The notes under the pieces were generated by a model. That model had not been told where the DNA came from, did not search any database, and saw only the letters and a program-made list of their open reading frames with translations. Made by a program: the position numbers and the translations under genes. Positions 1 through 64,000 of a DNA stretch of 64,000 nt are shown one piece after another. Each line of letters begins with the position of its first letter. The stretch's first letter is position 1. The DNA lies in sequence record OQ411014.1. The stretch is one strand, 5' to 3'.

Positions 1-10
1 TGATTCTTAC

Positions 11-517
11 ATGGCTAAAGCAATGGCTAAATCACAGCGTTATAACAACATGCTGAATGGTCGTAAAGCTCCTTACGGTCAGAACCACCCACACAGCCAC
101 TACGTTGGTATGGTTGCTGAACACGCTACTTTAGTACTGATGGAAGAAATCGAACAGCTTCTGAACATTGATATGAAAATCGATGCAGTGTTCCTGGACG
201 ACAAGCGTGACAAAGAATGTGATATCGTTGTGAATGGTCTGCGTATTGAAGTAAAATGCATCAAGTACGGTTCATGGGTAAAATTCGGCCCTTGCATTAC
301 TGCCGCTCAACGTAAGAACATTGAACGCAAAGCTGATGTAGTACTGTGGGCTGTATACAACGAACGTAAACAATCCTTTACGTTTGAAGGTTTCAACCGT
401 GTAGAAGACATTGCTAACATCCCAACTGAAATGACTGGTGTCCAAGGTCGTGAGAAGATCGAAAACCATCCAGTAATGAGTATCATCAAACCTTTACAGG
501 AGATGCAATTTTGCTAA
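11..517 (+). CDS. Hypothetical protein, possible PD-(D/E)xK nuclease fold
   Basis: 168-aa ORF; motif CDIVVNGLRIEVK fits D...E-x-K; close to window edge. Confidence 0.45.
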   Translation: MAKAMAKSQRYNNMLNGRKAPYGQNHPHSHYVGMVAEHATLVLMEEIEQLLNIDMKIDAVFLDDKRDKECDIVVNGLRIEVKCIKYGSWVKFGPCITAAQRKNIERKADVVLWAVYNERKQSFTFEGFNRVEDIANIPTEMTGVQGREKIENHPVMSIIKPLQEMQFC

Positions 518-720
518 AATATTTCTTACACTTCGAAGATGATGATGAGTTTATTGTGGTACGTGAATTTACATTACCACATAAACCACAGAAAGGTGAT
601 TTCATTACAATTGGAACTGAATACCATTCAGTACAATATGTAGTTCAAGAAGTCGATACGTTCCTTGATATTGAAAGTGCAGCGTATAGTGTGAATGTTC
701 ATTTGGAAAAACGAAAATAA
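511..720 (+). CDS. Hypothetical protein
   Basis: 69 aa, overlaps upstream stop and abuts next start. Confidence 0.6.
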   Translation: MLKYFLHFEDDDEFIVVREFTLPHKPQKGDFITIGTEYHSVQYVVQEVDTFLDIESAAYSVNVHLEKRK

Positions 721-1067
721 TGAAAATTGTATCAGTACTGGCTGGGTTGATTTTATGTAGTACTCAAGTATTGGCTAGTACAGTCGATACTGATGTGAAT
801 TATAAGAAAGAGTACAAGACTGGTATTGCATCTGACCCATCATATTGTATTGGTTATGCGGATGCAAAGATGTTCCAGACAGGGAATCAGCAGTACTACG
901 AATGGATGAAACAATGGTACGAGGATCAAACTAGTAATACTGATTTGGTCATGAAGCCATTCAATCATCGTTCGTACGTTAACGGTACTGAAATGAATAA
1001 TAACGATTTGACCGTTGAATGTGTAATGGAATTTGATTTCATTATCACTGACGAGGTACAACAGTGA
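720..1067 (+). CDS. Exported hypothetical protein
   Basis: Signal-peptide-like N-terminus MKIVSVLAGLILCSTQVLA. Confidence 0.7.
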   Translation: MKIVSVLAGLILCSTQVLASTVDTDVNYKKEYKTGIASDPSYCIGYADAKMFQTGNQQYYEWMKQWYEDQTSNTDLVMKPFNHRSYVNGTEMNNNDLTVECVMEFDFIITDEVQQ

Positions 1068-1073
1068 GGCTCT

Positions 1074-1538
1074 ATGAGTGTATTTGATTTGGTATCTAGT
1101 ATTTCGTGGATTGAAGTAATAATCTTTATTGTACTTAGTGCAGTACTGTTCATGTTCATGTTCAACGATGATTACACGTACTGTAAAAAGATTCATAAAG
1201 CATGTGCAGAACCAGTATGGAAATCATTTTGGTATATGCAGTTCATCCCGAATAAGTTCATACGACCGTTTGAAAGCTGGTGTGATGTTTCAACCAGAAC
1301 AGTCCCCACGATTGAAACGATTTTATCTCTCTATGAAGATAATCGAGATTCGTTGATTATCAAACTTATACCTACATTAGATGATGATACAATCGAATTC
1401 ATATGCAAGAGATTACCATCCGTATCAATTAGGGTTAGTAACAAAATGGTTGTGAACTACAGGACTGAGCATGTGATTCCACCACGAGTTCTTGTGGGTT
1501 TGTTGAATATGTACGAAATAGAACGAAAGAAAATCTAG
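1074..1538 (+). CDS. Membrane-anchored hypothetical protein
   Basis: N-terminal hydrophobic helix; GAGG RBS. Confidence 0.7.
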   Translation: MSVFDLVSSISWIEVIIFIVLSAVLFMFMFNDDYTYCKKIHKACAEPVWKSFWYMQFIPNKFIRPFESWCDVSTRTVPTIETILSLYEDNRDSLIIKLIPTLDDDTIEFICKRLPSVSIRVSNKMVVNYRTEHVIPPRVLVGLLNMYEIERKKI

Positions 1539-1595
1539 ACATATACTTTGAGTGTGTTATAATACAGTCATCAAATAACAAGAAGAGAGGTTTAT

Positions 1596-2045
1596 ATGAA
1601 CGTACTAGGAACGAAGTTCAGTACTGCAATGGGTGCACGTAATGGTTGGTTTACTATCAATGAAGTACTGGACGATACTTTCAAACATTACACGTTCAAT
1701 CAGTGCCTAAAACTCAAAGTAACTCCAGAAACTAAAGATGACATGAACTTCATCGAGTGGGTTATGTATTGGGAAGGTTCACCCGTTGCAGTGCATTTAC
1801 ACGTTCTAACTACAGTATTGAGTACTGGTTATGTGAAAGCAACTGTCATCTCTAAGCGTCATGTATTCACTGATGAAATTGGTGAATTCCCAGGTAAACA
1901 AGCAATCATTGATGGTTACATGATTGATGGGAAATTCATGGATAAGAAGGGTGCAGAGGCATATCATACTCGTAAGCTAATGAACGGGAACTTCCGTCCA
2001 GCAGCTAAGATCCCTGATGCAGTCATTCAACCTAAACGTAAGTAA
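1596..2045 (+). CDS. Hypothetical protein
   Basis: 149 aa; GAGG RBS; upstream TAGACA-16-TATAAT promoter at 1536-1563. Confidence 0.8.
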   Translation: MNVLGTKFSTAMGARNGWFTINEVLDDTFKHYTFNQCLKLKVTPETKDDMNFIEWVMYWEGSPVAVHLHVLTTVLSTGYVKATVISKRHVFTDEIGEFPGKQAIIDGYMIDGKFMDKKGAEAYHTRKLMNGNFRPAAKIPDAVIQPKRK

Positions 2046-2094
2046 TGTAGTCCCTCCTTAACTGGGGGGATTTAAACACATAAGGACAAAATAA

Positions 2095-2520
2095 ATGTTC
2101 AAATATTGTTTCCGTACGTATGTAGTACTGTTCTTAGTACCAGCACTGTACTTGATTACTGCACAACTTAGTAAAATCTTCGAAAGTCTTAGCTTTTTGA
2201 ATTTTACTGCACCAGAACAGTACAAAATTCTATTGACAATAATGTACGTTTTTTCTTTCATATTGTCAGTACTGATCATTTTCAATTCAGGATGTGACTA
2301 CCGAGAGTTTCATATTTTCAGAAACTTCAAGAACGTAACGTACTCAAAGTTCTGGAGTTATATACTCGCAGTCCCTGTTGTATTGAATTTCCATATTGAG
2401 GGCTTCTCGTTCACAACTTTTATGCTCTTCATTGAACCAATTGCAATCTATATGTACATCCATCAACATAACCGATTCGTATTGAGTCATAATCTAGTCC
2501 ACGTAGAGGAACAACCATGA
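2095..2520 (+). CDS. Multi-pass membrane protein
   Basis: About 4 hydrophobic segments; AAGGA RBS. Confidence 0.7.
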   Translation: MFKYCFRTYVVLFLVPALYLITAQLSKIFESLSFLNFTAPEQYKILLTIMYVFSFILSVLIIFNSGCDYREFHIFRNFKNVTYSKFWSYILAVPVVLNFHIEGFSFTTFMLFIEPIAIYMYIHQHNRFVLSHNLVHVEEQP

Positions 2521-4573: not shown

Positions 4574-5566
4574 ATGACTGTAAAACAACTCAATCTAGAA
4601 TCTATTCAAGACGATATCATGGATGAATGTTTTGTAAATGAAAACAATACGTTCGAGCGTATTAGTGAACAGTCACATGACAGTACTGAAGAAGTAGAAG
4701 AAAGTACTGATGACGTAGGTTCTTTCAAGACTTACAACACATCTAGCGTTTTACCAGAAGGTGAGACGAATGAATCTATTATTCGTTTAATCCGTGACGG
4801 TATCAATGTGAAGCGTAACATTGACCTTATCGTACGTAACAACGTAGGCTTAGTATATAGCCAAGCACGTCAGTGTACTTGTAATATCCCATTCCAAGAT
4901 AAAGCACAGTACGCTTTTGAAGGTCTAATGCGTGCAATCCATCGTTATGATGTGAATCAGAATATTCTTTTCAGTACTTACGCTACTGTGTCTATTCGCC
5001 AAACACTCTATAACTTTGGTAATGATGAAGTTCGTCTAATCAGTATTCCACGTCACTTGTCAGTGGATAACATCAAGATTCAGAACTACATTGAGAAGCA
5101 TCGTTCTAAGTTCGGTCGTACCCCAAGTGAAGATGAAATCAGTACTGCTACTGGCATCAAGTTATCCGCAGTGAAACGTGTAGTGCAGTACATGAACAGT
5201 AAGCCAATGAGTTTCGATACTCCAATGGGTTCTGACAGTACTGAAAACGATATGAGCTTAGTGGATGTAATCCCAGGAACTTCCAATGATTACACACTAA
5301 GTGCAGATACAGTTCAGAAAGCACCACTAGATGTAATTGCATTGGTCATGTCTGAACTACCAGAAGAAGAGCAGTTGCTGATCAATAAGATTCACGGCTT
5401 GAATGGACATGAAGAAAGTACTTTTATTGCTCTAGAGACTGCTGGATTGGTAGATGCGAAGGGTAAGAAGCTAACTAACCGTTGCACTATTCATCGTCGT
5501 TACAATGCAATACTGGATAAGATTCGTAATATTCTAAAAGCACGTGACATTTCATTCGATGACTGA
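4574..5566 (+). CDS. Phage-encoded sigma70-family RNA polymerase sigma factor
   Basis: Region 2 (NVGLV...EGLMRAIHRYD...FSTYATVSIRQ...ISIPRHL), region 3 (GRTPSEDEIS...SFDTPMG) and a divergent region 4. Confidence 0.88.
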   Translation: MTVKQLNLESIQDDIMDECFVNENNTFERISEQSHDSTEEVEESTDDVGSFKTYNTSSVLPEGETNESIIRLIRDGINVKRNIDLIVRNNVGLVYSQARQCTCNIPFQDKAQYAFEGLMRAIHRYDVNQNILFSTYATVSIRQTLYNFGNDEVRLISIPRHLSVDNIKIQNYIEKHRSKFGRTPSEDEISTATGIKLSAVKRVVQYMNSKPMSFDTPMGSDSTENDMSLVDVIPGTSNDYTLSADTVQKAPLDVIALVMSELPEEEQLLINKIHGLNGHEESTFIALETAGLVDAKGKKLTNRCTIHRRYNAILDKIRNILKARDISFDD

Positions 5567-7895: not shown

Positions 7896-8447
7896 ATAAT
7901 CTCGATTAACCATTATGGTATAAAGAAACCTAATCCACTCGAAAATGTAGAGGGTAGATGAGTTGAGTAATCGCAACGAAGTGCAAATGAAACCCGTTAG
8001 GTGAAGGCATAGTTAGTACCTCCCACGGCGACGCGGCACTATAAATGAGCATGGTAAGATGATATTGCTCACTCGATAGACGTATAGGATGAACACCTAC
8101 CAAATATCTAAGGGAGTTCATCAAAAAGGCTGGCTATAGATCCGTCCAGAATTTGATGAACACAGTACTGAATTGACTGTATAGTTCAGTACTGAAGTGT
8201 AGTAAGACTACGACCGTTGCAGAACAGAGATAGGGAGAAACAGGGCAACCCGCTTCCGTATCGTAAGATAATTCTCTATACAGTACTCCGATGCTATCAG
8301 CGTCAGATTGTCGTCCCTCCCTTGTGGGGGGATGAAATTTCCTCAACAAATCTCGTCAGGATTGATTCAGTACTATTGATATTAAATGAATATTCAGTTA
8401 TGATACGAAGTATCTAACGAATACCAGACTTCTCATAAGAGAAGGAT
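7896..8447 (+). ncRNA. Candidate large structured non-coding RNA (~550 nt)
   Basis: No credible ORF; many stems, e.g. 8116-8125/8152-8161, 8046-8051/8066-8071, GG-GCAA-CC, TATC-GTAA-GATA, 8429-8444; own promoter. Confidence 0.6.
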
Positions 8448-9491: not shown

Positions 9492-9616
9492 AATAATACA
9501 GTACAGAAACTTTTCTGTACTTTTTAAGAAAAAAGAGTTGACACAGATTTCAGTACTGATATAATTACTACATCAAGAACGAACTAACTAAAACACTCAA
9601 ACATAGGATTAAAAAT

Positions 9617-38474: not shown

Positions 38475-38482
38475 CTTTTTAA

Positions 38483-49246: not shown

Positions 49247-49256
49247 ATTTCTCTCC

Positions 49257-51999: not shown

Positions 52000-52004
52000 G
52001 ATTT

Positions 52005-52969: not shown

Positions 52970-53039
52970 CCGCACCCTCTGGGGTTTCCGCTTTCTCGCG
53001 TCTATGTAGTAATTATACGCTTTTTCAGGATCAAGTCAA
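52970..53039 (-). ncRNA. Two-hairpin sRNA family, variant copy with promoter
   Basis: TTGACT-16-TATAAT; CGC-GAGAAA-GCG hairpin; ACCC-CAGA-GGGUGC. Confidence 0.55.
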
Positions 53040-53744: not shown

Positions 53745-53839
53745 GTTAAAAATTAGTTTGACAGTACTGAATAAAAGCGTATAATGTTTTATATCGAGAG
53801 CGGGAAGAGTTCCCGCCTCCATTAAAGAGGAATTAAAAA

Positions 53840-54064
53840 ATGACTACTAAAACTTTCAACGGCCATAAAAACTACAACCATTGGAATGTTAGCCTTTGGA
53901 TCAATAACGATGAATCACTGTACCAATTGGCCCTGGAATGTATTAAAAGCACCAACACGCGAGATAAAGCGGTTGAGCGGATGTTACGCCTTTTAGGTAC
54001 TCACACGCCTGATGGGGCACGTTATAGCAAATCAAGCGTTCGTGCGGCAATGGTTGGAATGTAA
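53840..54064 (+). CDS. Early protein, paralog of 56336-56575
   Basis: NGHKNYNHWNVSLWINNDESLY...TPDG..YS...RAAMVGM. Confidence 0.85.
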   Translation: MTTKTFNGHKNYNHWNVSLWINNDESLYQLALECIKSTNTRDKAVERMLRLLGTHTPDGARYSKSSVRAAMVGM

Positions 54065-54157
54065 TAGAATATATTTAAAGTACTATCATTCTATGCGATA
54101 GTACTTTATAATAGTGTTCTAACATACAGTACTCACTTAACTAATAGGATGTATACC

Positions 54158-54535
54158 ATGATCATTAAATTCTACGCTACCCGTGAAATCGCTCGCATCG
54201 TTGCCCGTACCGAAGGAGAAACCTTTAAAGATATGGGAACGAGTGCTGAGAAGGGTAAACGCTGGGCGGTACAGTTCAAAGAATTATCAGATATTATTAA
54301 TTCACCTGAGCCAGTACTGACAGCGGCAGAACAAGCGAAAGCCAATGAGCTGGCGGATCTTCTGAATGGTGTCAATGTGAACGTTAAAGTTAATGCGGCG
54401 GCCTGGTCACATGCTGATGCACTGGCAGCTTTAAAAAGTCCTGATAGTGTATCTCGTCGAGTGGTAGAAATAAAGCACGACCGCAAGGGCAACCGCGTTA
54501 CAGTATACAGTAAGCGTAAAATTGCAGTACTGTAA
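54158..54535 (+). CDS. Early hypothetical protein
   Basis: Start at MIIKF after AGGAT RBS. Confidence 0.75.
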   Translation: MIIKFYATREIARIVARTEGETFKDMGTSAEKGKRWAVQFKELSDIINSPEPVLTAAEQAKANELADLLNGVNVNVKVNAAAWSHADALAALKSPDSVSRRVVEIKHDRKGNRVTVYSKRKIAVL

Positions 54536-54633
54536 TAATTCAAAAAAGTACTTGCACAGTACTGAATAAAGCGTATAATGTTTTATATCGAGAGCGGGAA
54601 GAGTTCCCGCCTCCACTTAAGAGGAATTAAAAA

Positions 54634-54864
54634 ATGACTACTATGTATATGATCGAAGTTAAAACCGTAAAAGATACGACCACGAATAAAACTACTTACT
54701 TACAGCGGATCTGCGGTGTCTGGCAACGTATCAGCAAATCAAAGTACTTTAAATTAACATCATATGCAAATCGTTCGGATTCATTCAGTACTGAAATAAA
54801 AGGTAATAAAGTACACCAATACGGCACTTATTATTATTACAGCCTGGACGCGATTGCAGTATAA
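54634..54864 (+). CDS. Early hypothetical protein
   Basis: Own promoter, stem and GAGGA RBS. Confidence 0.8.
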   Translation: MTTMYMIEVKTVKDTTTNKTTYLQRICGVWQRISKSKYFKLTSYANRSDSFSTEIKGNKVHQYGTYYYYSLDAIAV

Positions 54865-54897
54865 TCATATTTTTTGAAAAATTTACAATTGCCGGTA

Positions 54898-54976
54898 TTG
54901 ACTTATTTTGTCAGTACTGGCATAATGTATTCATTGGCAGATAAGCCGTAGCCCATAGGGTGCGGAGATGTATCTA
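54898..54976 (+). ncRNA. Two-hairpin sRNA family, variant copy with promoter
   Basis: TTGACT-17-CATAAT; GGC-AGAUAA-GCC hairpin; GCCC-AUA-GGGUGC; converges on the next copy. Confidence 0.55.
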
Positions 54977-54994
54977 TAGAAAAAGTAGTTTAGT

Positions 54995-55077
54995 ATAGTT
55001 ACAGTTATGCACCCGGTGGGTTAGTGACTTTCTCGTCTTTATGTAGCTATTATGCCAGTACTGGATAGTGCTGTCAA
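54995..55077 (-). ncRNA. Two-hairpin sRNA family, copy with promoter
   Basis: TTGACA-17-CATAAT; GAC-GAGAAA-GUC hairpin; core at 55007-55020. Confidence 0.6.
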
Positions 55078-55156
55078 TACTTTTTTCTATTCAGTACTGA
55101 AAAAGTATTTGTAGAAAGTACTTGCATAGTACTGAATAAAGCGTATAATGTTTTAT

Positions 55157-55223
55157 ATCAGGACGGGGAAGAGATTCACTGTTAAGTAGTCTAGGTGTAA
55201 GACGTATGAAAAACACCCCTGAT
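55157..55223 (+). ncRNA. Pseudoknot sRNA family, copy B
   Basis: Own promoter 55122-55149; AUCAGG/CCUGAU closing stem; GGUG/CACC pairing. Confidence 0.65.
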
Positions 55224-55324
55224 AAAAGAATTAAAAAGTACTAGACAGTAAGAAATAAAAAGCGTATAATGTTTTACATCGAGTAGGGGGAATGGTTCTC
55301 CTACCTAAATTAAGGAATTACAAA

Positions 55325-55924
55325 ATGAATACTATCGTTAAATCTTTCGCAGACCTGGACGCAGAACAGAAGATCGCAGCGGTTGAAATGTATACAGACC
55401 GTGAAAAAGATAGCTCGGAAGATTTCTTTTCCGAAGGTGTAGTGGAATATTACCGTGAAACGGTACTACCTGAATACGGCATAGATGAAGCTGAATTGCA
55501 ATACAGTGGTTTTTGGTCGCAAGGTGACGGTGCATCAATCAGTACTGACAGCGTGGACGCGGAGAAGTTTTTACGCAAGATTAAAGCGTTAACGAAATAT
55601 CGTTCTATCCGTCACTTGTTGAATGAAGATGATTTGGCAATGAGTGTAGAACGTTCACACTCTCGCTACGCACACGAAAACACGGTAAGCGGATACATTG
55701 AAACGGCGTACACTGATTTAACTGTAAAACAAGCGGCACTTGCTGATGACCTGGAAAACGTACTGACCGAAACTATCCGCGAATTGTCTTGTGAACTGTA
55801 CCGTGAACTTGAGAAGGCTTATGATGATTATTACAGTACTGAAAGCATGGTTAATCAAATCGAGGGTAATGGTTACCAGTTTGAAGTAAACGAAGATGGC
55901 GACGTGGTAGGGATTGAATACTAA
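55325..55924 (+). CDS. Acidic early protein with YSGFWSQGDGAS motif
   Basis: True start MNTIVK; D/E-rich; motif recalled from phage and plasmid proteins of unclear function. Confidence 0.8.
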   Translation: MNTIVKSFADLDAEQKIAAVEMYTDREKDSSEDFFSEGVVEYYRETVLPEYGIDEAELQYSGFWSQGDGASISTDSVDAEKFLRKIKALTKYRSIRHLLNEDDLAMSVERSHSRYAHENTVSGYIETAYTDLTVKQAALADDLENVLTETIRELSCELYRELEKAYDDYYSTESMVNQIEGNGYQFEVNEDGDVVGIEY

Positions 55925-56017
55925 AAAAGTACTTGCATAGTACTGAATAAGGCGTATAATGTTTTATATCGAGAGCGGGAACACTTCCCGCCTCACATTA
56001 AGAGGAATTAAAAAAAA

Positions 56018-56251
56018 ATGAGTACTATCTTAACCGTTTCTCAATCTGTTGCCCTGGCTGACTTGTTGAACGCTTTAAGCCGTTGTACTGAGGTTGGCTT
56101 GTTTGATGTGGTTGACGTTGCCCCTGATGTTATCAATCATTTTTGTGATGCAATGGCTGAATGCCAGGAAGATGATCGCCGTATGATGGCGGTAAACTTT
56201 GCGGAAGTCCAGCCGGGAGAGTTAAAAGGTTTACCGGAAGTTAAAAATTAG
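56018..56251 (+). CDS. Early hypothetical protein
   Basis: Own promoter and GAGGA RBS. Confidence 0.8.
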   Translation: MSTILTVSQSVALADLLNALSRCTEVGLFDVVDVAPDVINHFCDAMAECQEDDRRMMAVNFAEVQPGELKGLPEVKN

Positions 56252-56335
56252 TTTGACAGTACTATCAAATAGTGTATAATGTTTTATATCGAGAGCGGGA
56301 ATGGTTCCCGCCTCCAATTAAGAGAGATTAATATC

Positions 56336-56575
56336 ATGGCAACTACTAAAACTTACAACGGTTACAAAAACAAAACTCATTGGAACGTTTCTTTGTGGAT
56401 CAATAACGATGAATCATTGTACCGCCTGGCGAAAGAGTTTATCGACGATAACGCTAATCGTGAAGATGCAGCCCGTCAGATGATGCTCTTTCTGGAACAA
56501 ACTGGACAAGATAAAACACCGGACGGCTTTAAGTATAGTACTACTGCGATCCGTGCGGCAATGGTTGGAATGTAA
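56336..56575 (+). CDS. Early protein, paralog of 53840-54064
   Basis: NGYKNKTHWNVSLWINNDESLY...RAAMVGM. Confidence 0.85.
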   Translation: MATTKTYNGYKNKTHWNVSLWINNDESLYRLAKEFIDDNANREDAARQMMLFLEQTGQDKTPDGFKYSTTAIRAAMVGM

Positions 56576-56664
56576 AAAAAAGAGTAGACAGTACTGAATA
56601 AAAGCGTATAATGTTTTATATCGAGAGCGGGAATGGTTCCCGCTACTAACCTGGAGTAATTGCA

Positions 56665-56850
56665 ATGCTGAATATTTTAATCGTTGATGAACATGGTAAA
56701 GAACTGGAATCATTTGAGTCTATGATCAATCCAATTGGTTCAAAGACTATCACTACTAATCTGGCTGTTTATGAATGTAATGAGTTTTCTGTTGACTTTA
56801 AACGCAATGAGATTGTAGTACACGTTCAAAATGATTTTATGAAATTTTAA
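56665..56850 (+). CDS. Early hypothetical protein
   Basis: Own promoter; GGAG RBS. Confidence 0.75.
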   Translation: MLNILIVDEHGKELESFESMINPIGSKTITTNLAVYECNEFSVDFKRNEIVVHVQNDFMKF

Positions 56851-56939
56851 AATAGTACTTGCATAGTACTGAATAAGGCGTATAATGTTTTATATCGAGA
56901 GCGGGAATGGTTCCCGCCTCACTATTAAGGAATACTACA

Positions 56940-57161
56940 ATGGCTAATATCACTACTCTTTCCCAACTTGAAGCACTGGTTAAATCTATGCGTGACCATG
57001 CCAATAGTATTGGTGTACAAGATCCGGCGGTATGTTTTTGTGACGAATTGAATGATGATACTTTAATCATTGCAGAAGTCCAGGACGTTTCCAACTATTC
57101 ATCGCGTTACACTGGCGACGTAGCAAATAAAGGTGACTTCTGTTTATACCTTACAAAATAA
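56940..57161 (+). CDS. Early hypothetical protein
   Basis: True start MANITT after AAGGA. Confidence 0.8.
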   Translation: MANITTLSQLEALVKSMRDHANSIGVQDPAVCFCDELNDDTLIIAEVQDVSNYSSRYTGDVANKGDFCLYLTK

Positions 57162-57211
57162 TAACAACGGGGATAATAACTCCCCGTTACTTTTTCAGTA
57201 CTGAATCATTT

Positions 57212-57295
57212 AATAGACGGATCTATGCACCCGGTGGGTTAGTGACTTTCTCGTCTTTATGTAGCTATTATGCCAGTACTGGATTGTATTGTCAA
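57212..57295 (-). ncRNA. Two-hairpin sRNA family, copy with promoter
   Basis: About 60 bp identical to the 55007 copy; TTGACA-17-CATAAT; core at 57225-57238. Confidence 0.6.
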
Positions 57296-57418
57296 GCATT
57301 TAAAGTACATTTATTTTAAAAAGAATATGAAGAAAGTACTATACACGGCTGAATAAAAGCGTATAATGTTTTGCATAGGGGGAAACAACTTCCCCCACTA
57401 ATTAAGAGAGAAATAAAA

Positions 57419-57625
57419 ATGGCTAAATGTACTATTTGTAATAAAGCAATTGTGCTAGTTCCTTCCGCTAGTGAACGTGCTAAACGTTATGGTGGCAAAG
57501 CGTCAGACTATACAAAAATGTTCACTACTCATACTGAATGTGCTATTAAAAAACGTTCAGAAGAAAGCACTGAATTAATGCGTCGAATTGTCGCGGAATC
57601 AAAAGCTAAAAAAGTACTTGCATAA
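57419..57625 (+). CDS. Early protein with possible Zn site (CxxC...HxxC)
   Basis: True start MAKCTIC; later HTEC. Confidence 0.75.
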   Translation: MAKCTICNKAIVLVPSASERAKRYGGKASDYTKMFTTHTECAIKKRSEESTELMRRIVAESKAKKVLA

Positions 57626-57693
57626 CTTATTCAGTACTGTACAATGTTTTTCAAAGGGGGAACAACTTCCCCCGCTAATTAAGGAATAAGAAA

Positions 57694-57930
57694 ATGGCTG
57701 AACAAATTAAATCAACGTCTTCGAATGTGACGGGTACTGTAGCTCACTTTATCGGTGATGAATCGCGTGGTGTTCCCTATTGTGCGGTGCATGTAAACAC
57801 TGAGGGTAACTACTGGTTTACAGTTTACGGATCATATTCATTTGGACGACCTGGACACCAAAAAATCCTGGATAAAGTACAACCAACGGGTAAAAATATC
57901 ACTGCTGAAATGTTTTATAAAAAATCATAA
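57694..57930 (+). CDS. Early hypothetical protein
   Basis: Own promoter; AAGGA RBS. Confidence 0.8.
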   Translation: MAEQIKSTSSNVTGTVAHFIGDESRGVPYCAVHVNTEGNYWFTVYGSYSFGRPGHQKILDKVQPTGKNITAEMFYKKS

Positions 57931-58018
57931 AAGTACTTGCATAACTTATTCAGTACTGTACAATGTTTTATATCGAGAGCGGGGAATACTTCCTCGCCTT
58001 AACTAAAAGGATATACTA

Positions 58019-58318
58019 ATGAAAATTGCACTAATCGCCCTGGCCTTGTCTGTTTCCTCTTTCGCCGCTACTGCATCGCGTGATGTACCAACTGAAAAAT
58101 TTATTCAGTGCCAGGTTATCATGACAGACGAAAACACGGGCGGCATGTTTACCAAACCGCTTGAATTAAATCCGGCGATGTTTAAGGCGGGGATGTTCCA
58201 CGAAGAAGACGAAAAAGGCAGTACTACAATCTATTACGACGAACAACGTAAACGCGGCACTGTTACGGTAATGGATGAATCATCAGTTACCTTTACGGGG
58301 ATCATTACCTGTAAGTAA
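58019..58318 (+). CDS. Early exported two-Cys protein
   Basis: Signal peptide MKIALIALALSVSSFA; IQC and C-terminal ITCK. Confidence 0.8.
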   Translation: MKIALIALALSVSSFAATASRDVPTEKFIQCQVIMTDENTGGMFTKPLELNPAMFKAGMFHEEDEKGSTTIYYDEQRKRGTVTVMDESSVTFTGIITCK

Positions 58319-58420
58319 TAAGGGGAATTATCATCATAACTTTCACTGGCGGTTAACAGTACTGAATCATAGGGGGAATAGTTCCCCCTTACTATATTAA
58401 ACATCAAAGGAGTAAAGGCA

Positions 58421-58690
58421 ATGGCTATCATCACGGCAAAGACTATCTATACTATTCAACATGGTAATCAGTCCTACCAGGTGGAAGGCGTGGAAGGTTT
58501 AAAACAGTACTGCGACGATATTATGGGCGGCCTGGTTGACCGTATGACGGCGGGGAATGTAGGCCATCATTTAACTGATAAGATGAATCAGCACGCTTTC
58601 TTGATGAAATCATTCGACGAGCTTGATCTAATCGTCGATACCGTTCGCAGTGTAAAACAGTATATTGATGATATAACCAAAGATGATTGA
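58421..58690 (+). CDS. Early hypothetical protein
   Basis: 89 aa; AAGGAG RBS. Confidence 0.8.
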   Translation: MAIITAKTIYTIQHGNQSYQVEGVEGLKQYCDDIMGGLVDRMTAGNVGHHLTDKMNQHAFLMKSFDELDLIVDTVRSVKQYIDDITKDD

Positions 58691-58872
58691 TAGTACTGTA
58701 AACGTGTATAAGCCTGTAGAATCAATTCTACGGGCTTTTTTGTTTTATATGATGTGTTAGCCTGGCTGGTGGCGTTAAGGCCGTTAGAATGCGATTGAGA
58801 GCGTCGAAAGTATTTTAAAAGTATTTTTAGAAAGTACTTGCACAGTACTGATAAAAGCGTATAATGTTTTAC

Positions 58873-58945
58873 ATCAGGACGGGGAAGCAAACTAGCTCAA
58901 CCGTTAAGTAGTCCAGGAGTAAGACATACGAAAACCTCCCCTGAT
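58873..58945 (+). ncRNA. Pseudoknot sRNA family, copy A
   Basis: Own promoter 58838-58865; AUCAGG/CCUGAU, ACGG/CCGU, GUAGUC/GAC-UAC and GGAG/CUCC pairings. Confidence 0.65.
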
Positions 58946-59024
58946 AAAGTACTAAAAAGTAGTTTGACAATAGAAAGTAAACGAGTATAATACTCACATC
59001 AACTTAACGAAAGGAATAAAAAAA

Positions 59025-59252
59025 ATGGCTATCATCATCACTCGCGTATCTGGTACAGTTGGCAATGCGGTAGTAGTAGCGGTTATCACTAACAAGAAAG
59101 GTGCGGAACTGCATTTTGCAATGAATAACTGGTCAGTGAATGAGTTCGGGCAGTTCGCTAGTGTAGAATACATTGAAACCTATCAAGTACCGACTATTAG
59201 CTTAACTGATTTAGGTGTCGAGCGTATCCTTTGCCTGGATGAATTAAACTGA
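59025..59252 (+). CDS. Early hypothetical protein
   Basis: Own promoter at 58964; AAGGA RBS. Confidence 0.8.
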   Translation: MAIIITRVSGTVGNAVVVAVITNKKGAELHFAMNNWSVNEFGQFASVEYIETYQVPTISLTDLGVERILCLDELN

Positions 59253-59339
59253 TAAAAAGTACTTGCACAGTACTGAAAAAAGCGTATAATGTTTTATATA
59301 GGGGGAAACAACTTCCCCCGCTAATTAAGGAATAAGAAA

Positions 59340-59552
59340 ATGGCTAATATCTGCACTGTACTGAAAAATGCAAAACAAGTTTTATTTTCTGACCATGAAA
59401 ATTTTAATAAAGATATTACAGGCGTTAAGAATATCAAAGATGTAAAAAGTGCAATAGGTATCTATTGCAATATGAAACGTGTTGGAACGTTCGGTGACAA
59501 GGTACTATATCAGGCAGGGGATTACAATTTTACACTGACTATCATTAACTAA
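59340..59552 (+). CDS. Early hypothetical protein
   Basis: Own promoter; AAGGA RBS. Confidence 0.8.
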   Translation: MANICTVLKNAKQVLFSDHENFNKDITGVKNIKDVKSAIGIYCNMKRVGTFGDKVLYQAGDYNFTLTIIN

Positions 59553-59638
59553 AAATATTATCACAGTACTATTGACATAATTTGATAGTACTGACATAAT
59601 AACTTTTATCAAGTACATACTATTAAGGAATTTAAAAA

Positions 59639-59818
59639 ATGGCTATCATCGCAAAAACTGAGATTCAAGGCTTAGATTCTATCCTCCTGGCTTATGAGTC
59701 CGAGAAAGGTTTATATGTTGTTTCCTATGGTGATTATATTCGTGACTTTGAAGAAATTGATCAAGCCTTTGAATGCTACATTCGCCAGGTGAATAAAGCA
59801 TACGACGATTACCGGTAA
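59639..59818 (+). CDS. Early acidic protein (59 aa; not in ORF track)
   Basis: MAIIAKTEIQG...; TTGACA-17-CATAAT promoter at 59572; AAGGA RBS. Confidence 0.75.
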   Translation: MAIIAKTEIQGLDSILLAYESEKGLYVVSYGDYIRDFEEIDQAFECYIRQVNKAYDDYR

Positions 59819-59901
59819 AATATTATCACAGTACTATTGACATAGTTTGATAGTACTGACATAATAACTTTTATCGAGTGCAACTATTAAGGAATACTAA
59901 A

Positions 59902-60153
59902 ATGCAATCTATCAGTACTTTAATCGATGCAGGTTATGATGTTCGTCGTTCCATGATCGCGGTTAGTTCTTCCCAGGTCGTTCAAAGTGGTTATGTATGT
60001 TTTGTTGTTCGTGGTACATTACAGGAGCGAGCAATAAACCACGATGTAAAGAATAATTGCTCTTACATTGTATTCCGAAAAGTCAAATATAAACTTGATG
60101 TTCCCGTAAAGCCTATTAGCGGGGCGTACAACGTAGAATCATTAAAAGCGTAA
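59902..60153 (+). CDS. Early hypothetical protein
   Basis: True start MQSIST; promoter at 59837. Confidence 0.75.
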   Translation: MQSISTLIDAGYDVRRSMIAVSSSQVVQSGYVCFVVRGTLQERAINHDVKNNCSYIVFRKVKYKLDVPVKPISGAYNVESLKA

Positions 60154-60221
60154 CAGCATAGCAGTACTGACCATTAACGCCGTAGCGGTCGATTTAGGCC
60201 GCTTATATTGAGGATTTAACT

Positions 60222-60611
60222 ATGAATACTAATCAAGTACTGAACGAAATCGAAAGCATCATTAAGCCGATGAAACGTGTTGATGCAATGCTAACACCGG
60301 AAGAAAGTCGCTTGTATGAGCGATACAGCGTCGAACAAGCCCAGGCGATGGCACGTATTCGCCCCGTTGCCAGTACTGACAAGGAAGATCCAACGTTAGC
60401 CATCCAAAAGAAGATCGACATCTTAGCGGCGAATATGTATATGATTGATGCGTCGCCAGGTAAAGTATTTGCGTATGATGATACAACTGAAAGCGATTTC
60501 TACTATAGCCTGGACGTGGGGGATCTTCCTATCGAGTCAGTGATTGAACATGTTGTAACTGTTGCTTATGATCATTTAGTTAAAAACAATGTTGACAGTA
60601 CTATCAAATAG
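60222..60611 (+). CDS. Early hypothetical protein
   Basis: 129 aa; GAGGA RBS. Confidence 0.8.
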   Translation: MNTNQVLNEIESIIKPMKRVDAMLTPEESRLYERYSVEQAQAMARIRPVASTDKEDPTLAIQKKIDILAANMYMIDASPGKVFAYDDTTESDFYYSLDVGDLPIESVIEHVVTVAYDHLVKNNVDSTIK

Positions 60612-60674
60612 CGTATAATGTTTTACATCGAGAGCGGGAATACTTCCCGCCTCACTAATTAAGGAATTAAAATT

Positions 60675-60908
60675 ATGATGCACATCCTTACTCTTACTCT
60701 GAATCACAAAACTTATGAAACTATCCTCGTCATCTCTGAGTCGCAGGAAAAGGTACGTGATCACGCGGCGAAAGTAATGCAGGCATTCAGTGAACGTTAT
60801 CCTACATGGGATCGTGATTATAGTATGTTACACATTGCCGATGGCAACGCGATAATGGTCCAGGACGTGCCAAATCACGGGGCTGAATCAGTACTAGTTT
60901 TATTTTAA
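60675..60908 (+). CDS. Early hypothetical protein
   Basis: Own promoter; AAGGA RBS. Confidence 0.8.
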   Translation: MMHILTLTLNHKTYETILVISESQEKVRDHAAKVMQAFSERYPTWDRDYSMLHIADGNAIMVQDVPNHGAESVLVLF

Positions 60909-60996
60909 AATAGTACTTGCATAGTACTGAAAAAAGCGTATAATGTTTTATATCGAGAGCGGGAATAGTTCCCGCCTTAACTAAAAGGGTAACATC

Positions 60997-61209
60997 ATGC
61001 AAGGTCAACTAATCGTTCGTAAATGGTCTGATACTAACGCTAAACCGTGGGATGTACAATACATCGCCCCAAATGGTGAATCCAGATATCAACCAGGTGT
61101 AACGCATAGTACTGAGCAATTCGCCGCCGCTCATCGCGAACGTCTGTTACAATCAATTCAGCAAGGTTCCGGTGAAAAATTCATTCAGGATCATTGGCTG
61201 AAAGATTAA
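60997..61209 (+). CDS. Early hypothetical protein
   Basis: Own promoter and RBS. Confidence 0.75.
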   Translation: MQGQLIVRKWSDTNAKPWDVQYIAPNGESRYQPGVTHSTEQFAAAHRERLLQSIQQGSGEKFIQDHWLKD

Positions 61210-61221
61210 CAAAAAAAGATT

Positions 61222-61313
61222 AAAAAAGGGATTGACTCCGGTCAGTCCTTTTTGCTATTATATACGCATCGAAACAATCTAGCCCACCGGGTGCATAAAT
61301 GTATCTTTTTTTT
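61222..61313 (+). ncRNA. Two-hairpin sRNA family, copy driven by a fused terminator/promoter
   Basis: TTGACT-18-TATTAT; core CCCACCGGGTGCAT at 61283-61296; ends in T8. Confidence 0.6.
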
Positions 61314-61386
61314 GCTGGTGGCTAGTACTGAAAACTATTTTTAAAAAGTACTTGCATTGTACTTAGAATAAAGTATAATGTTTTAC

Positions 61387-61459
61387 ATCAGGACGGGGAA
61401 CGAAACAAGTAACCCCGTTAAGTAGTCCAGGAGTAAGACATACGAAAACCTCCCCTGAT
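61387..61459 (+). ncRNA. Pseudoknot sRNA family, copy C
   Basis: Own promoter 61352-61379; ACGGGG/CCCCGU stem; 3' part identical to copy A. Confidence 0.65.
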
Positions 61460-61527
61460 AAAATAGTTTGACAATAGAAATTAAACGAGTATAATACTTA
61501 CATCAACTACTGTTAAGGAAACATAAA

Positions 61528-61803
61528 ATGCGGATTCTACTGACAGCTAACGAAATCGAACAAGTACTGACTACTAACCTGGAAGACTGGAAACGTGAAG
61601 CAGATATCCAGGCGGTTCAATTGCTTAACGATAAGTTAACGCCGGATGACTTAAGCAAAATTGTAGATCCTCAATTCTACGAAGATATCCACGACACCGC
61701 GTTAAGCGTCGAGGATGTACTTGATAAGCATTTTATTGATATTGATTTGCAGGTTTACGGTCGTAAAAACTTTATCACTATCCACGACATTTACAATAAT
61801 TAA
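61528..61803 (+). CDS. Early acidic protein
   Basis: Own promoter at 61468; AAGGA RBS. Confidence 0.8.
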   Translation: MRILLTANEIEQVLTTNLEDWKREADIQAVQLLNDKLTPDDLSKIVDPQFYEDIHDTALSVEDVLDKHFIDIDLQVYGRKNFITIHDIYNN

Positions 61804-61883
61804 GTATTGACAAAGTATCTTAGTACTGTATAATAGTTTACATCAAGGGGGGAATGGTTCCCCTCAAGTCCAGGAGATACACC

Positions 61884-62147
61884 ATGAACGCTATTGAAAT
61901 CACTATTAATGCACACGTATACGACAACGTAGTACTGCAAACTACTATGACCGCCAATGATAGCAGTACTTTGCGAAATACTGTTATCAGTGCCGTTTGT
62001 GCTGCTGTTGGTGATGTAGCACTGGAGAACGCACAACATATTAACCAGGCCTTTACTATGTGCAAGCGTGATAACTCAAAACATATTATCGTCGAAGGTG
62101 TAGGCGGTGTTGAATTTAACGTATACATGAAAAAGGTAACAGCATGA
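61884..62147 (+). CDS. Early hypothetical protein
   Basis: True start MNAIEI after AGGAG. Confidence 0.8.
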   Translation: MNAIEITINAHVYDNVVLQTTMTANDSSTLRNTVISAVCAAVGDVALENAQHINQAFTMCKRDNSKHIIVEGVGGVEFNVYMKKVTA

Positions 62148-62335
62148 CCGTCGATGAAGTCCGCAAAGTACTGGCAGCGTTACGCTATCATAATCATAGC
62201 AAGGTCATAAATGATCCTGATTATGTTGATTCAAGCCTGGAGGAAGACACCTTGAACGCGATTAGCTATATGCAAACGTTACTGAAGCGTATGACTGAGA
62301 AGAATAGATCTGATTTCATCGGTGATAAAATTTAA
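62144..62335 (+). CDS. Early hypothetical protein
   Basis: ATGA overlap. Confidence 0.7.
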   Translation: MTVDEVRKVLAALRYHNHSKVINDPDYVDSSLEEDTLNAISYMQTLLKRMTEKNRSDFIGDKI

Positions 62336-62423
62336 AAAGTACTTGCACAGTACTGATAAAAGCGTATAATGTTTTATATCGAGAGCGGGAATACTTCCCG
62401 CCTCACTATTAAGGGATAACAAA

Positions 62424-62642
62424 ATGAATTTAAATAAAGTCGAAACGAAAACTATGGTTGAAGCTATTAAACACGGTTTCACATTTAGAAATGATTCACA
62501 TTTTATTAATTTTCAACAAGGCCATAGAACTATTAAAAAACTAACAGACAAAGGTTTATTAGTAGAAGTGAATGAAGGGAACGGCGTGGAATATCGCCCT
62601 ACCCATGACGGTATTACATTTATGAAATACAGTGTAAAATAA
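62424..62642 (+). CDS. Early protein, winged-helix-like
   Basis: RTIKKLTDKGLLVEV...YRPTHDG pattern. Confidence 0.65.
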   Translation: MNLNKVETKTMVEAIKHGFTFRNDSHFINFQQGHRTIKKLTDKGLLVEVNEGNGVEYRPTHDGITFMKYSVK

Positions 62643-62735
62643 TTCAAAAAGTACTTGCACAGTACTGAGATTCAGGTATAATGTTTTACATAGAGCGGGG
62701 GAATGGTTCTCCCGCCTACATTAAGGAATAGAATC

Positions 62736-62960
62736 ATGACTACATACGCAGCACTCGAATCAGTAGTATCAGACCTGGCATTTGAATCTAAGCCGTTTGA
62801 TGCGATCTATAGTACTGATTACCGTGATGCCGTCCTGAATAGTACGCAGGAAGAAAAAGATAAACTTATCGCAACATACCATGAAGCATGGAAGTACTAC
62901 CGCCAATGGGAAAAAGAAGAAAGTGAGTCTACCATCGACGGCCTGAATAATTTAATTTAA
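62736..62960 (+). CDS. Early acidic protein
   Basis: True start MTTYAA after AAGGA. Confidence 0.8.
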   Translation: MTTYAALESVVSDLAFESKPFDAIYSTDYRDAVLNSTQEEKDKLIATYHEAWKYYRQWEKEESESTIDGLNNLI

Positions 62961-63046
62961 AAAGTTTTATTTCAGTACTATTGACATAGCTTGATAGTAC
63001 TGACATAATAACTTTTATCAAGTACATACTATTAAGGAAACAAATC

Positions 63047-63460
63047 ATGACTTCTCAAGCTCAAAACGTCCTGGCCCAAAATATTCAAGCTGACAAAAAT
63101 CATGCCGCTATGGTTGTTGGTTATATTCAAGCTATGCAATTCAGTACTGTACACAATGAGAACGGCGATTACCTGGAAGATTATGAGCTATCTGATGAAG
63201 CACGTCAAGCGGCGGTGATTGCATGTTCTCGTTTCCTTGAGAAACACGGTAATGATCTGGAAGTAGTTCGCGGCATGTTTATTGACTATAGTTATGAGAA
63301 AGCAGGTAATGATCTGTTTCTTACCCGCGAAGGTCACGGAACTGGTTTTTGGGATCGTGATTTAGGTCACTACAGCGATGTATTCACGAAGTACTGCGAA
63401 AGTATTAATGTTTGTGATCCGTACCTGGGCGATGATAACTTGATCTATATGGGTGAGTAA
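63047..63460 (+). CDS. Conserved phage hypothetical protein
   Basis: AGNDLFLTREGHGTGFWDR motif recalled from a widespread phage family; promoter at 62981. Confidence 0.8.
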   Translation: MTSQAQNVLAQNIQADKNHAAMVVGYIQAMQFSTVHNENGDYLEDYELSDEARQAAVIACSRFLEKHGNDLEVVRGMFIDYSYEKAGNDLFLTREGHGTGFWDRDLGHYSDVFTKYCESINVCDPYLGDDNLIYMGE

Positions 63461-63721
63461 ATGGCTGTAGGATTTGCAAAGGACGGAGCGGAGCAATTAG
63501 AGATTCTGGCGGTCGTGGAGGCCGCTGTACAGCACGCAAGAAATCAGCTAGGGGATAGTACTACTGAATCACTTAAACACTGTCAGGACTGTTTTAAGCC
63601 TATTCCTGAACGTCGTAGAGAACTGGTTAAAGGTTGCAAATATTGTATTGACTGTCAAACGGAATATGATACTATATTTAAACGAGATCCGCGTAATTGC
63701 TGGCATAGGTCGATGAGATAG
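63461..63721 (+). CDS. DksA/TraR-family C4 zinc-finger protein (YbiI-like)
   Basis: MAVGFAKDGA...ESLKHCQDCFKPIPERRRELVKGCKYCIDCQ follows the YbiI pattern (MASGWANDDA...ESL..CEECGAPIP.ARREA.PGV..CI.CQ). Confidence 0.85.
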   Translation: MAVGFAKDGAEQLEILAVVEAAVQHARNQLGDSTTESLKHCQDCFKPIPERRRELVKGCKYCIDCQTEYDTIFKRDPRNCWHRSMR

Positions 63722-63759
63722 GGGATCACTCCCCTGTTTTATTATTTCAGTACTGTAAC

Positions 63760-63837
63760 CTATAGATACATTTATGCACCCGGTGGGTTAGTTGTTGTCA
63801 TGGGATATATTATGCCAGTACTGGATAAGGTTGTCAA
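63760..63837 (-). ncRNA. Two-hairpin sRNA family, copy with promoter
   Basis: TTGACA-17-CATAAT; core at 63774-63787 followed by AAAUGUAUC, as in the 61283 copy. Confidence 0.6.
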
Positions 63838-63951
63838 CAATTATTTTGATGTAATTATTTTAAAAAAGTACTTGCACAGTACTGAAAAAGGCGTATAATG
63901 TTTTACATCGAGAGGGGGAATACTTCTCCCTGGTACATTAAGGAATAAAAA

Positions 63952-64000
63952 ATGAAAGCATCAAAAAAACGTAATACCAAGAAATCATCTTCAACGTTCG
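63952..64000 (+). CDS. Partial early gene (runs off the window)
   Basis: ATG after promoter 63872, stem and AAGGA RBS. Confidence 0.65.
   Translation, partial: MKASKKRNTKKSSSTF

Follow-up and report, generated by a model that had tools for sequence, protein, structure and literature searches.

The AGTACT palindrome of RaK2-like jumbo phages, a highly iterated genomic dyad placed in early promoters

What keeps one short palindrome at several copies per kilobase throughout a phage genome, and why does it lie in the core of so many promoters? The question is raised by the last 64 kb of Escherichia phage EJP2 (OQ411014.1; genome, 349,185 bp), a RaK2-like jumbo myovirus filed under Asteriusvirus. 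This stretch (EJP2 positions 285186 to 349185; here "the window," numbered 1 to 64000) is filled with the word AGTACT. A first-pass annotation, made from the letters of the window alone, proposed that AGTACT is a genome-wide signature like the cyanobacterial palindrome HIP1, kept by a phage DNA-binding, modifying, or packaging agent, and that it could serve as the operator shutting off early transcription. We find that the word is enriched as a complete dyad throughout the genome and across its clade and that it is built into one temporal class of promoters. The explanation to which we give about an even chance (a probability of roughly 0.5) is that a phage-encoded symmetric DNA-binding protein reads the dyad genome-wide and represses the early promoters.

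For genome-wide tests, the remaining EJP2 sequence was added to the window and genes were taken by a simple open reading frame (ORF) rule (493 genes, 89% coding), whereas tests within the window used the deposited annotation. Relatives were sampled as 20 to 70 kb each (syntenic core samples for the clade) rather than as whole genomes, and the Escherichia coli host sample was 50 kb of K-12.

Abundance and nature of the dyad

The word occurs along the entire window, which carries it as a single field:

1 to 64000, no strand assigned: AGTACT field of 294 sites, including 104 copies of CAGTACTG; extended symmetric consensus, tTtCAGTACTGaAa

Dinucleotide-preserving shuffles of the window yield 23.7 ± 4.9 copies of AGTACT (maximum, 35) and 1.1 ± 1.2 copies of the palindromic octamer CAGTACTG, compared with the 294 and 104 observed. 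AGTACT tops the hexamers of the window, and GTAC tops its tetramers. Over the 349-kb genome, the excess is 11-fold for AGTACT (1,312 copies), 102-fold for the octamer (425 copies versus 4.2 expected), and approximately 900-fold for TTCAGTACTGAA (35 copies). All 10-kb bins contain the word, with 17 to 67 copies where about 3 are expected; the mean spacing is about 270 bases, and the density in EJP2 is 3.8 per kb. By region of the window, the density is 4.1 per kb in positions 1 to 33000, 3.2 in an array of propeller genes described below, and 7.6 in positions 50501 to 64000, and it is 3.7 per kb in annotated coding DNA versus 9.6 per kb in intergenic DNA. Coding copies are found in all three reading frames (94:31:78). 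The five sites reported earlier for the first kilobase (133, 340, 734, 759, and 892) are all correctly placed, and the assertion that the word is present in both coding and noncoding DNA agrees with these densities. The octamer excess, the presence in all frames and in noncoding DNA, and an origin outside codon and amino acid usage are the marks of a highly iterated palindrome; the HIP1-like signature at the DNA level that had been proposed thus spans all 349 kb.

The enrichment persists when amino acids and codons are preserved, a control that the first-pass annotation had named in advance among those able to overturn its claim. When synonymous codons are permuted within genes, 61.5 ± 6.1 copies of AGTACT are expected and 203 are observed (z = 23); the corresponding values for CAGTACTG are 7.8 ± 2.4 and 59, and permutation of codon order lowers AGTACT to 29.6. 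Genome-wide, Ser-Thr dipeptides are written as AGT-ACT in 539 of 838 cases (64% versus 13 to 17% expected), Val-Leu dipeptides are written as GTA-CTN in 61% (25% expected), and [KQE]-Tyr-(T..) contexts use AG-TAC in 58% (13% expected). The dipeptides ST, VL, and QY are themselves overused 1.45- to 1.64-fold, while TS, LV, and YQ are not, and the pressure therefore extends to protein sequence. The phage encodes six tRNAs (EJP2 256.7 to 268.8 kb, outside the window), which include Ser(GCU), an unusual Ser(ACU) with A34, and Thr(UGU); these three represent decoding capacity for the AGU and ACU codons of AGT-ACT Ser-Thr pairs. We favor a reading in which these codon and tRNA features are effects of the motif.

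To the reverse idea, that the word is a by-product of codon usage, amino acid usage, a dispersed repeat, or a sequencing artifact, we give virtually no credence. The AGT, ACT, and GTA codons are indeed common, and the phage does carry the three tRNAs just named. However, two shuffles (z = 23 to 52) and the dipeptide-conditioned tests rule out codon and amino acid usage as the cause, and noncoding DNA and all three frames are affected. A dispersed repeat or mobile element is ruled out by the flanks, where sequence conservation ends about 4 nucleotides (nt) to either side of the core, and an artifact is at odds with the presence of the trait in seven independently sequenced genomes.

The force behind the word is weak and uniform. 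Among the 1,782 positions in EJP2 at which the amino acids permit AGTACT, 61% carry it. Occupancy is 0.52 to 0.76 in each 25-kb bin regardless of module or strand, there are no significant outlier genes, neighboring contexts are used independently (r = 0.04), and the log odds per site are 1.6 to 2.5. A per-site force of this kind holds the word at approximately 60% of the possible positions. Selection for one site per interval was rejected (coefficient of variation of spacing, 0.98 versus 1.03 ± 0.03; neighbor correlation, 0.04).

The selected unit is the full dyad. Enrichment rises as the palindrome is completed, from 1.2- to 1.7-fold for CAGTA followed by a base other than C to 12.8-fold for CAGTAC, 30-fold for CAGTACT, and 102-fold for CAGTACTG, and half-sites reach 1.7- to 1.8-fold once full sites are masked. 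Symmetric flanks exceed the expectation for independent halves (576 versus 472), and the flanking profile is mirror-symmetric despite nearly all genes lying on one strand. None of 39 listed natural variant positions falls inside the motif (1.7 expected; not significant, P = 0.18). With the dyad as the unit, a reader that recognizes double-stranded DNA symmetrically is favored over one that is monomeric, is strand specific, or acts on RNA. A strand-specific replication signal, read by primase or another monomeric factor, or a signal acting in the transcripts is thus very unlikely. It would suit a benefit that is additive per site, uniform over the genome, and phage encoded, and the clade has its own primase and helicase. 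However, half-sites alone do not show the enrichment, the flanks are mirror-symmetric, the trait is missing from outgroups that have the same replication genes, and an RNA signal would have no reason to be perfectly palindromic, given that almost every gene lies on the same strand.

Near-cognates of the word are graded. The flanks C..G give 102-fold enrichment, mixtures of T and C give 20-fold, A gives 8- to 15-fold, and G..C gives 3-fold, and the nine classes of single-mismatch neighbors range from 0.97- to 2.6-fold with none depleted. Grading without depleted neighbors therefore looks like an affinity landscape and not like a repair sink, and a sink modeled on very-short-patch repair was rejected on this ground.

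Distribution among phages and turnover of sites

AGTACT is enriched 4.4- to 8.9-fold in Erwinia phage Hallingskeid (275 sites in 70 kb), Escherichia phages A4 and 121Q, Klebsiella phage RaK2, Cronobacter phage GAP32, and Xanthomonas phage XaC1. Pooled over these six relatives and EJP2, the value is 9.5-fold, and GCGC is absent. In the outgroups (Vibrio phage 2.275.O, which is a syntenic sister, Pseudomonas phage PA5oct, Xanthomonas phage XacN1, Salicola phage SCTP-2, and T4), AGTACT stands at 0- to 1.2-fold (0.5-fold in T4) and GCGC is present, and the K-12 sample contains 3 copies of AGTACT (0.3-fold, approximately 0.06 per kb) and 342 of GCGC. The trait is found in 7 of 7 RaK2-like genomes over five host genera (Escherichia, Erwinia, Klebsiella, Cronobacter, and Xanthomonas); with its absence from outgroups and host, it therefore belongs to the phage clade and not to the host. 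The base favored at flank position −1 shifts within the clade, being C in EJP2 and Hallingskeid (0.52) and A in XaC1 (0.40), with G always disfavored, as expected from a coevolving phage-encoded reader. The agent behind the word is very probably encoded by the phages. Regarding the DNA-binding, modifying, or packaging agent of the first-pass annotation, its phage origin is thus borne out by clade distribution and flank drift, a modifying function is unlikely for reasons given below, and packaging is unsupported.

A host factor as the target is highly improbable. Here the sites would bind the nucleoid-occlusion protein SlmA (GTGAGTACTCAC, which has the same core) as decoys, either blocking division or titrating SlmA. 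The central six bases are identical (PMC3020112), and the hosts of the clade are mostly Enterobacterales. However, SlmA requires G1, T2, a purine at position 3, A4, and G5 in each half-site (PMC3020112), whereas phage position 3 is C in 52% of half-sites and G in 7% in EJP2; G is the most avoided base at this position in each phage (3 to 12%), and the strict site GTRAGYRCTYAC occurs once in 349 kb. The trait is also equally strong in the Xanthomonas phage. The decoy was rejected on the flank requirements and on this phage of a Xanthomonas host.

That the sites are targets of a phage enzyme with ScaI- or RsaI-type specificity, modified for protection or strand discrimination, is quite unlikely. 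Palindromes of 6 to 8 bases are typical methyltransferase targets, and EJP2 encodes methyltransferases of the Dam family (PF05869) and the C5 type (PF00145), as predicted from family membership only; no third, dedicated methyltransferase is annotated in the EJP2 record. However, in a published nanopore comparison of native and amplified DNA of Hallingskeid, the nearest relative, GATC and CCWGG were the only motifs flagged as modified, in agreement with its two methyltransferases, although the genome has the same enrichment; its DNA sequenced normally (PMC11780129), which argues against dense nicks at the sites. Bisulfite data for RaK2 indicate a CpG-type site (PMC3622015). A protective modification would also explain tolerance of the sites but not 100-fold enrichment.

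Individual sites turn over between lineages. In each phage, 50 to 70% of the conserved usable contexts in 37 orthologous genes bear the word, but a site in EJP2 ceases to predict one in a relative as distance grows (odds ratio, 5.8 for Hallingskeid and 1.1 for XaC1), with fourfold sites near saturation in all compared pairs. Site-by-site conservation in genes, which was therefore rejected, decays to independence, so that inside genes density is kept and not position.

Such turnover has a bearing on a biased repair or gene-conversion drive, in which a phage enzyme would convert near-cognates to AGTACT during recombination-dependent replication so that the word would build up without serving a function and promoters would simply tolerate it. 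This idea, which resembles very-short-patch repair and has been proposed for HIP1, is in our view unlikely. It agrees with an even occupancy that does not depend on gene class, strand, or neighbors, with the weak force per site, and with an equilibrium occupancy near 0.6 despite turnover. On the other side, a conversion sink should deplete the neighboring words, none of which is depleted; the shift in amino acid dipeptides needs a stronger or a selective force; and a drive would neither shun the middle and late promoters nor hold the fixed registers in early promoters that are described below.

The second anomaly of these genomes is the loss of other palindromes. GCGC has 0 copies in 349 kb (approximately 440 expected) and 0 in each sampled RaK2-like genome. 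About 20 palindromic hexamers occur at 0 to 2 copies in approximately 650 kb of clade DNA, among them CAGCTG, CTCGAG, GAGCTC, GCATGC, TCCGGA, CTGCAG, and all hexamers containing GCGC; AAGCTT is absent in EJP2 only. That GCGC is banned outright in phages of five host genera suggests a cause carried by the phages, for example a nuclease specific for GCGC; no such nuclease was identified. Separately, at EJP2 182.3 kb (outside the window), a small nuclease-like protein of 101 amino acids with a stand-alone T5orf172/GIY-YIG-type domain is encoded shortly downstream of the major capsid gene, and counterparts are annotated in the same place in A4 and GAP32. An origin of GTAC by double deamination of methylated GCGC was rejected, since the numbers are too low (approximately 440 GCGC expected versus approximately 2,150 excess GTAC) and flank specificity and ongoing equilibrium would be left unaccounted for.

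These paired anomalies are the basis of another explanation, in which the dyad is a mark of self-identity: it would label DNA as phage, and a phage factor would spare or favor DNA so labeled while host DNA is destroyed or silenced. The mark is possibly coupled to the absence of GCGC via a phage nuclease that cuts GCGC-rich host DNA, with promoter use being secondary. We regard this as possible but doubtful. In its favor, 50 kb of E. coli and the phage differ sharply in both words (3 AGTACT and 342 GCGC versus 1,312 and 0), and AGTACT excess and GCGC loss occur together in 7 of 7 clade genomes and 0 of 5 outgroups. The force is additive, per site, and uniform, like that for Chi-type words, and the clade has ordinary bases with only Dam/Dcm-type methylation. 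However, the co-occurrence is in a single clade and may be mere ancestry, no nuclease specific for GCGC was identified, and a mark alone leaves the registers in early promoters and the avoidance of middle and late promoters unaccounted for. This explanation overlaps that of a repressing dyad reader, since it also needs a reader, and differs in the purpose given to the intragenic sites.

Promoters and other loci of the window

The loci of the window that bear on promoter use are as follows:

4574 to 5566, plus strand: sigma-70-family protein; Pfam regions 2 and 3, with region 4 not detected
9538 to 9565, plus strand: promoter TTGACA-N-CAGTACTG-a-TATAAT, with the motif in the spacer and adjoining the −10 box
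20901 to 20929, plus strand: promoter in which TTGACA overlaps AGTACT (TTGACAGTACTG), with a second AGTACT 10 bp downstream in the spacer
51972 to 51999, plus strand: promoter TTGACT-N16-TATAAT, with CAGTACTG abutting the −10 box
53745 to 63900, plus strand: early array of approximately 30 small-gene cassettes, with a sigma-70-type promoter containing one or two AGTACT, a hairpin in the 5′ untranslated region (5′-UTR), and the ribosome-binding site TAAGGA
54547 to 54579, plus strand: example of the bipartite early promoter, with AGTACT fused to the −35 box TTGCAC, a second AGTACTG opening the 17-nt spacer, then TATAAT; dyads 11 bp apart

Three classes of promoters were distinguished by matches to consensus patterns, not by mapped transcription starts: sigma-70-type early promoters, TGTGnTATAAT (an extended −10 box with no −35 box) at replication genes, and T4-like TATAAATA at structural genes. 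With classes drawn in this way, the core carries the word in 32 of 56 early-type promoters (57%; 0.84 sites per promoter), 1 of 26 middle-type promoters (0.04 sites), and 1 of 10 late-type promoters (0.10 sites), where the intergenic background is 0.24 sites per 45 nt. Early promoters are thus 3.5-fold above background and differ from the middle and late ones (2 of 36; Fisher P = 1.8e-7), which are depleted (P = 0.008). The motif does lie in or beside the −35 box or spacer of the sigma-70-type promoters at 9538, 20901, and 51972, and its placement at the −35 region of most early promoters is confirmed by the 32 of 56 in which it overlaps the −35 box or spacer.

The registers are fixed. Counted from the −10 box, the dyads of EJP2 peak at −27 and −16, and the sole sharp peak in their spacing is 11 bp (26 pairs versus 4.9 expected). 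The bipartite form AGTACTTGCAYAGTACT occurs 10 times in the window (54547, 55117, 55928, 56854, 58833, 59258, 60912, 62338, 62650, and 63867), all on the plus strand and 16 to 17 nt upstream of TATAAT; there are 16 copies genome-wide, always on the coding strand and only in two end regions. The array of small early genes correspondingly comprises the right end of the window (53.7 to 63.9 kb) and the left end of the genome, and its cassettes follow the layout aAGTACTTGCAyAGTACTGaataaaagcgTATAAT, then a conserved 5′-UTR hairpin and TAAGGA; in variants, the word instead covers TTGACA or adjoins the −10 box. The plan recurs in Hallingskeid, where the dyads peak at −27 and −7 and the second dyad abuts the −10 box at 12 of its 19 TATAAT boxes. 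Dyad symmetry, overlap with core elements at fixed registers, and restriction to one promoter class are what would be expected of an operator, so that the suggestion of an operator at early promoters gains real support, also from the shared design in Hallingskeid.

The sigma-70-family protein has full-length orthologues in 72 records; the matches listed are all RaK2-like, and none is of the PA5oct type. With only regions 2 and 3 detected and its restriction to the clade, it fits promoters that lack a −35 box, and it is likely the reader of the motif-free TGTGnTATAAT middle promoters and not of the dyad. LexA boxes are not relevant, with only 4 weak CTGT-N8-ACAG sites.

Several other features were observed in the early array. 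The 5′-UTR hairpin begins a few nucleotides after the −10 box, e.g., GAGAGCGGGAA-N4-TTCCCGCCTC (of the GCGGGAA-N4-TTCCCGC type, with a GGGGGAA..TTCCCCC variant); it is also found in Hallingskeid and may be an mRNA-stabilizing or processing element. Compost, bird-gut, and chicken-gut metagenomes contain relatives of positions 53000 to 58999 that share approximately 70% of 31-letter words, and in these contigs breaks and joins fall at the repeated promoter cassettes, where segments of 0.3 to 4 kb are skipped or joined backward. This suggests either recombination between cassettes that shuffles the early genes or assembly ambiguity. The best-conserved early protein of the region is a zinc-finger protein of the DksA/TraR type (positions 63461 to 63721, plus strand; Pfam E = 2e-8), which shares 71% identity with the one in Hallingskeid. 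Proteins of the DksA/TraR type bind the secondary channel of RNA polymerase.

The word had also been described as an arm of terminators and as scarce in a homing-endonuclease gene, for which the loci are as follows:

33351 to 48129, minus strand: ten predicted intrinsic terminators between paralogous RCC1/beta-propeller genes, with the stem (ATA)CCAGTAC...GTACTGG(TAT) and a T run
36989 to 37016, 39699 to 39728, and 43454 to 43481, minus strand: examples of terminators with the CCAGTAC/GTACTGG stem
25910 to 27007, plus strand: HNH/homing-endonuclease-like gene (PHROGs E = 8e-26), with a single AGTACT at 26923

Terminator-like sites number 23, versus 8.8 ± 3.4 in shuffles. Ten terminators of the propeller array have the word in their stem, and two further intergenic regions of the array show the CCAGTAC/GTACTGG arm; the other terminators that were read by eye do not have this stem. 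The terminator part of the claim thus stands for the propeller array but is confined to that one paralogous array and therefore represents essentially one copied ancestral event. In the homing-endonuclease gene, the single site is as described, but the low density is not significant because only 3 contexts are usable, of which 1 is used; scarcity as a sign of recent acquisition was rejected, and a reading in terms of gene age is unsupported.

The propeller genes comprise 17 tandem paralogues (33386 to 50396, minus strand) and one outlier (19676 to 20854, minus strand), each with its own promoter (TATAAT) and terminator; no other long block of the window lies on the minus strand, and GC skew changes sign across this one. 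Elsewhere, an unannotated stretch free of ORFs (7926 to 8366, plus strand) is a candidate for a clade-conserved RNA of approximately 440 nt. It is 87% identical to Hallingskeid and approximately 78% identical to 121Q and about 20 other genomes, while the nearby genes are barely conserved; it is preceded by a terminator and a promoter-like TGTGATATAAT, and in its predicted fold (−129 kcal/mol; z = −3.3) two copies of CAGTACTG form a 13-bp stem. It matches no Rfam family. The 2.2 kb from 51195 to 53381, in which a 37-codon ORF is the sole annotated gene, contain many TTCAGTACTGAA sites and promoters in both directions, a 39-bp tandem repeat in three copies (51757 to 51873), and an array of approximately 200 bp with 8-bp periodicity that is free of AGTACT (52381 to 52575; GGCTAAAC/GGCTAGAT/GGATGGAT...). 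This region could serve as an origin or for packaging, or it could be an RNA region.

A proposed dyad reader and its relation to known systems

We propose that AGTACT, with the optimum TTCAGTACTGAA, is a dyad-symmetric word in double-stranded DNA that would be read by an abundant, phage-encoded, homodimeric DNA-binding protein, which would occupy the phage chromosome at intervals of approximately 270 bp. In early promoters used by host sigma-70, a word that covers the −35 box or spacer would be the operator through which early transcription is shut off, with the reader competing with sigma-70 holoenzyme; the middle (TGTGnTATAAT) and late (TATAAATA) promoters stay clear of the word. Occupancy of the whole chromosome would serve a second, additive purpose, either coating and compaction or the marking of DNA as phage. 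The shut-off part draws on dyad symmetry, fixed registers, and class specificity, while the second role is the more conjectural.

Several points weigh against this proposal. Pfam and NCBIfam reveal no DNA-binding domain in 99 proteins of the window, and 10 core candidate proteins likewise have no recognizable DNA-binding domain in Pfam, PHROGs, or NCBIfam. EJP02_285 was excluded as the reader, as it is also found in the motif-negative PA5oct. For a basic early protein (window positions 54158 to 54535), the single-sequence fold has a pLDDT of 48, and the model is unusable. Binding and repression at the word are deduced from sequence, with promoter classes set by simple consensus. Tightly bound intragenic sites could hinder elongating polymerases, and a repressor alone needs no 1,100 or so intragenic sites, so that the second, genome-wide role must be assumed. 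Finally, an activator or a virion-delivered factor is an alternative to a repressor at the early promoters.

With regard to the second role, the gap of approximately 60-fold in AGTACT density between phage and host, together with the absolute gap in GCGC, makes marking attractive. RaK2-like phages might then use a sequence-based identity code instead of base hypermodification or a protein "nucleus": a dimer would mark or coat phage DNA and time early shut-off, phage functions would act on GCGC-rich, AGTACT-poor host DNA, and the code would reshape the proteome and tRNA set. We put this forward as a tentative and rather doubtful extension.

One functional model for the proposed dyad reader is p6 of Bacillus phage phi29, an abundant DNA-binding protein that spreads over the full length of the phage genome and also represses an early promoter. 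Coverage of the viral chromosome and a part in the early-to-late switch are there combined in one protein; p6, however, recognizes bendability and not a defined word, and to our knowledge the phi29 genome has no iterated palindrome. No homologue of p6 came up in the present analysis, in which no search was aimed at one. T4 resembles EJP2 in its three promoter classes, its late TATAAATA, and its strong sigma-70 early promoters but shuts these off via AsiA/MotA and has no dyad in them, and the RaK2-like clade has its own sigma-70-family protein.

The word itself belongs with iterated genomic words such as HIP1, the uptake sequences, and Chi. HIP1 (GCGATCGC) is likewise a palindromic octamer at about 1 per kb or more, found in coding and noncoding DNA and not driven by codons. 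It is a different word, however (CGATCG has 0 copies in EJP2 and GATC is at 0.47-fold), its carriers are cellular and not a virus clade, and it is linked to CGATCG/GATC methyltransferases, where no link to a cognate methyltransferase is visible for AGTACT. In addition, one-off variants of AGTACT are not depleted, and AGTACT is built into one temporal promoter class. The DUS of Neisseria, the USS of Haemophilus, and Chi share with AGTACT the dense short words, the weak force per site, and writing via synonymous choices; they sometimes form inverted pairs in terminators and tell own from foreign DNA. They differ in being asymmetric (Chi is also skewed in orientation) and in having known readers (ComP and RecBCD), whereas AGTACT is a perfect dyad and its own reverse complement, which precludes any orientation, with a density several-fold higher than that of Chi. 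SlmA (GTGAGTACTCAC) and Noc offer chromosome-scattered palindromes with a dimeric helix-turn-helix reader, and the SlmA core is the same as AGTACT, but their sites number only tens per bacterial genome and the flanks that SlmA requires are disfavored in the phages. A full-text search of the literature found no prior description of the motif in phages, and the genome papers for EJP2, RaK2, and PA5oct do not mention it. What is new is the viral carrier, a perfect dyad in genomes purged of palindromes, and the wiring into one temporal promoter class.

Phage genomes are known for palindrome avoidance. A clade that purges about 20 palindromic hexamers nevertheless amplifies one of them about 10-fold (100-fold for the octamer) over five host genera, and the effect extends to protein sequences and tRNA content. 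For practical purposes, the motif is a one-line diagnostic of the clade in metagenomes, and, as recoding may remove functional sites, it is a design constraint for engineering these therapeutic-candidate phages. More broadly, it offers an entry point to how jumbo phages with ordinary DNA and no nucleus organize, protect, or recognize a 350-kb chromosome, to how early promoters used by host sigma-70 are switched off without the AsiA/MotA of T4, and to what maintains highly iterated palindromes, a question shared with HIP1.

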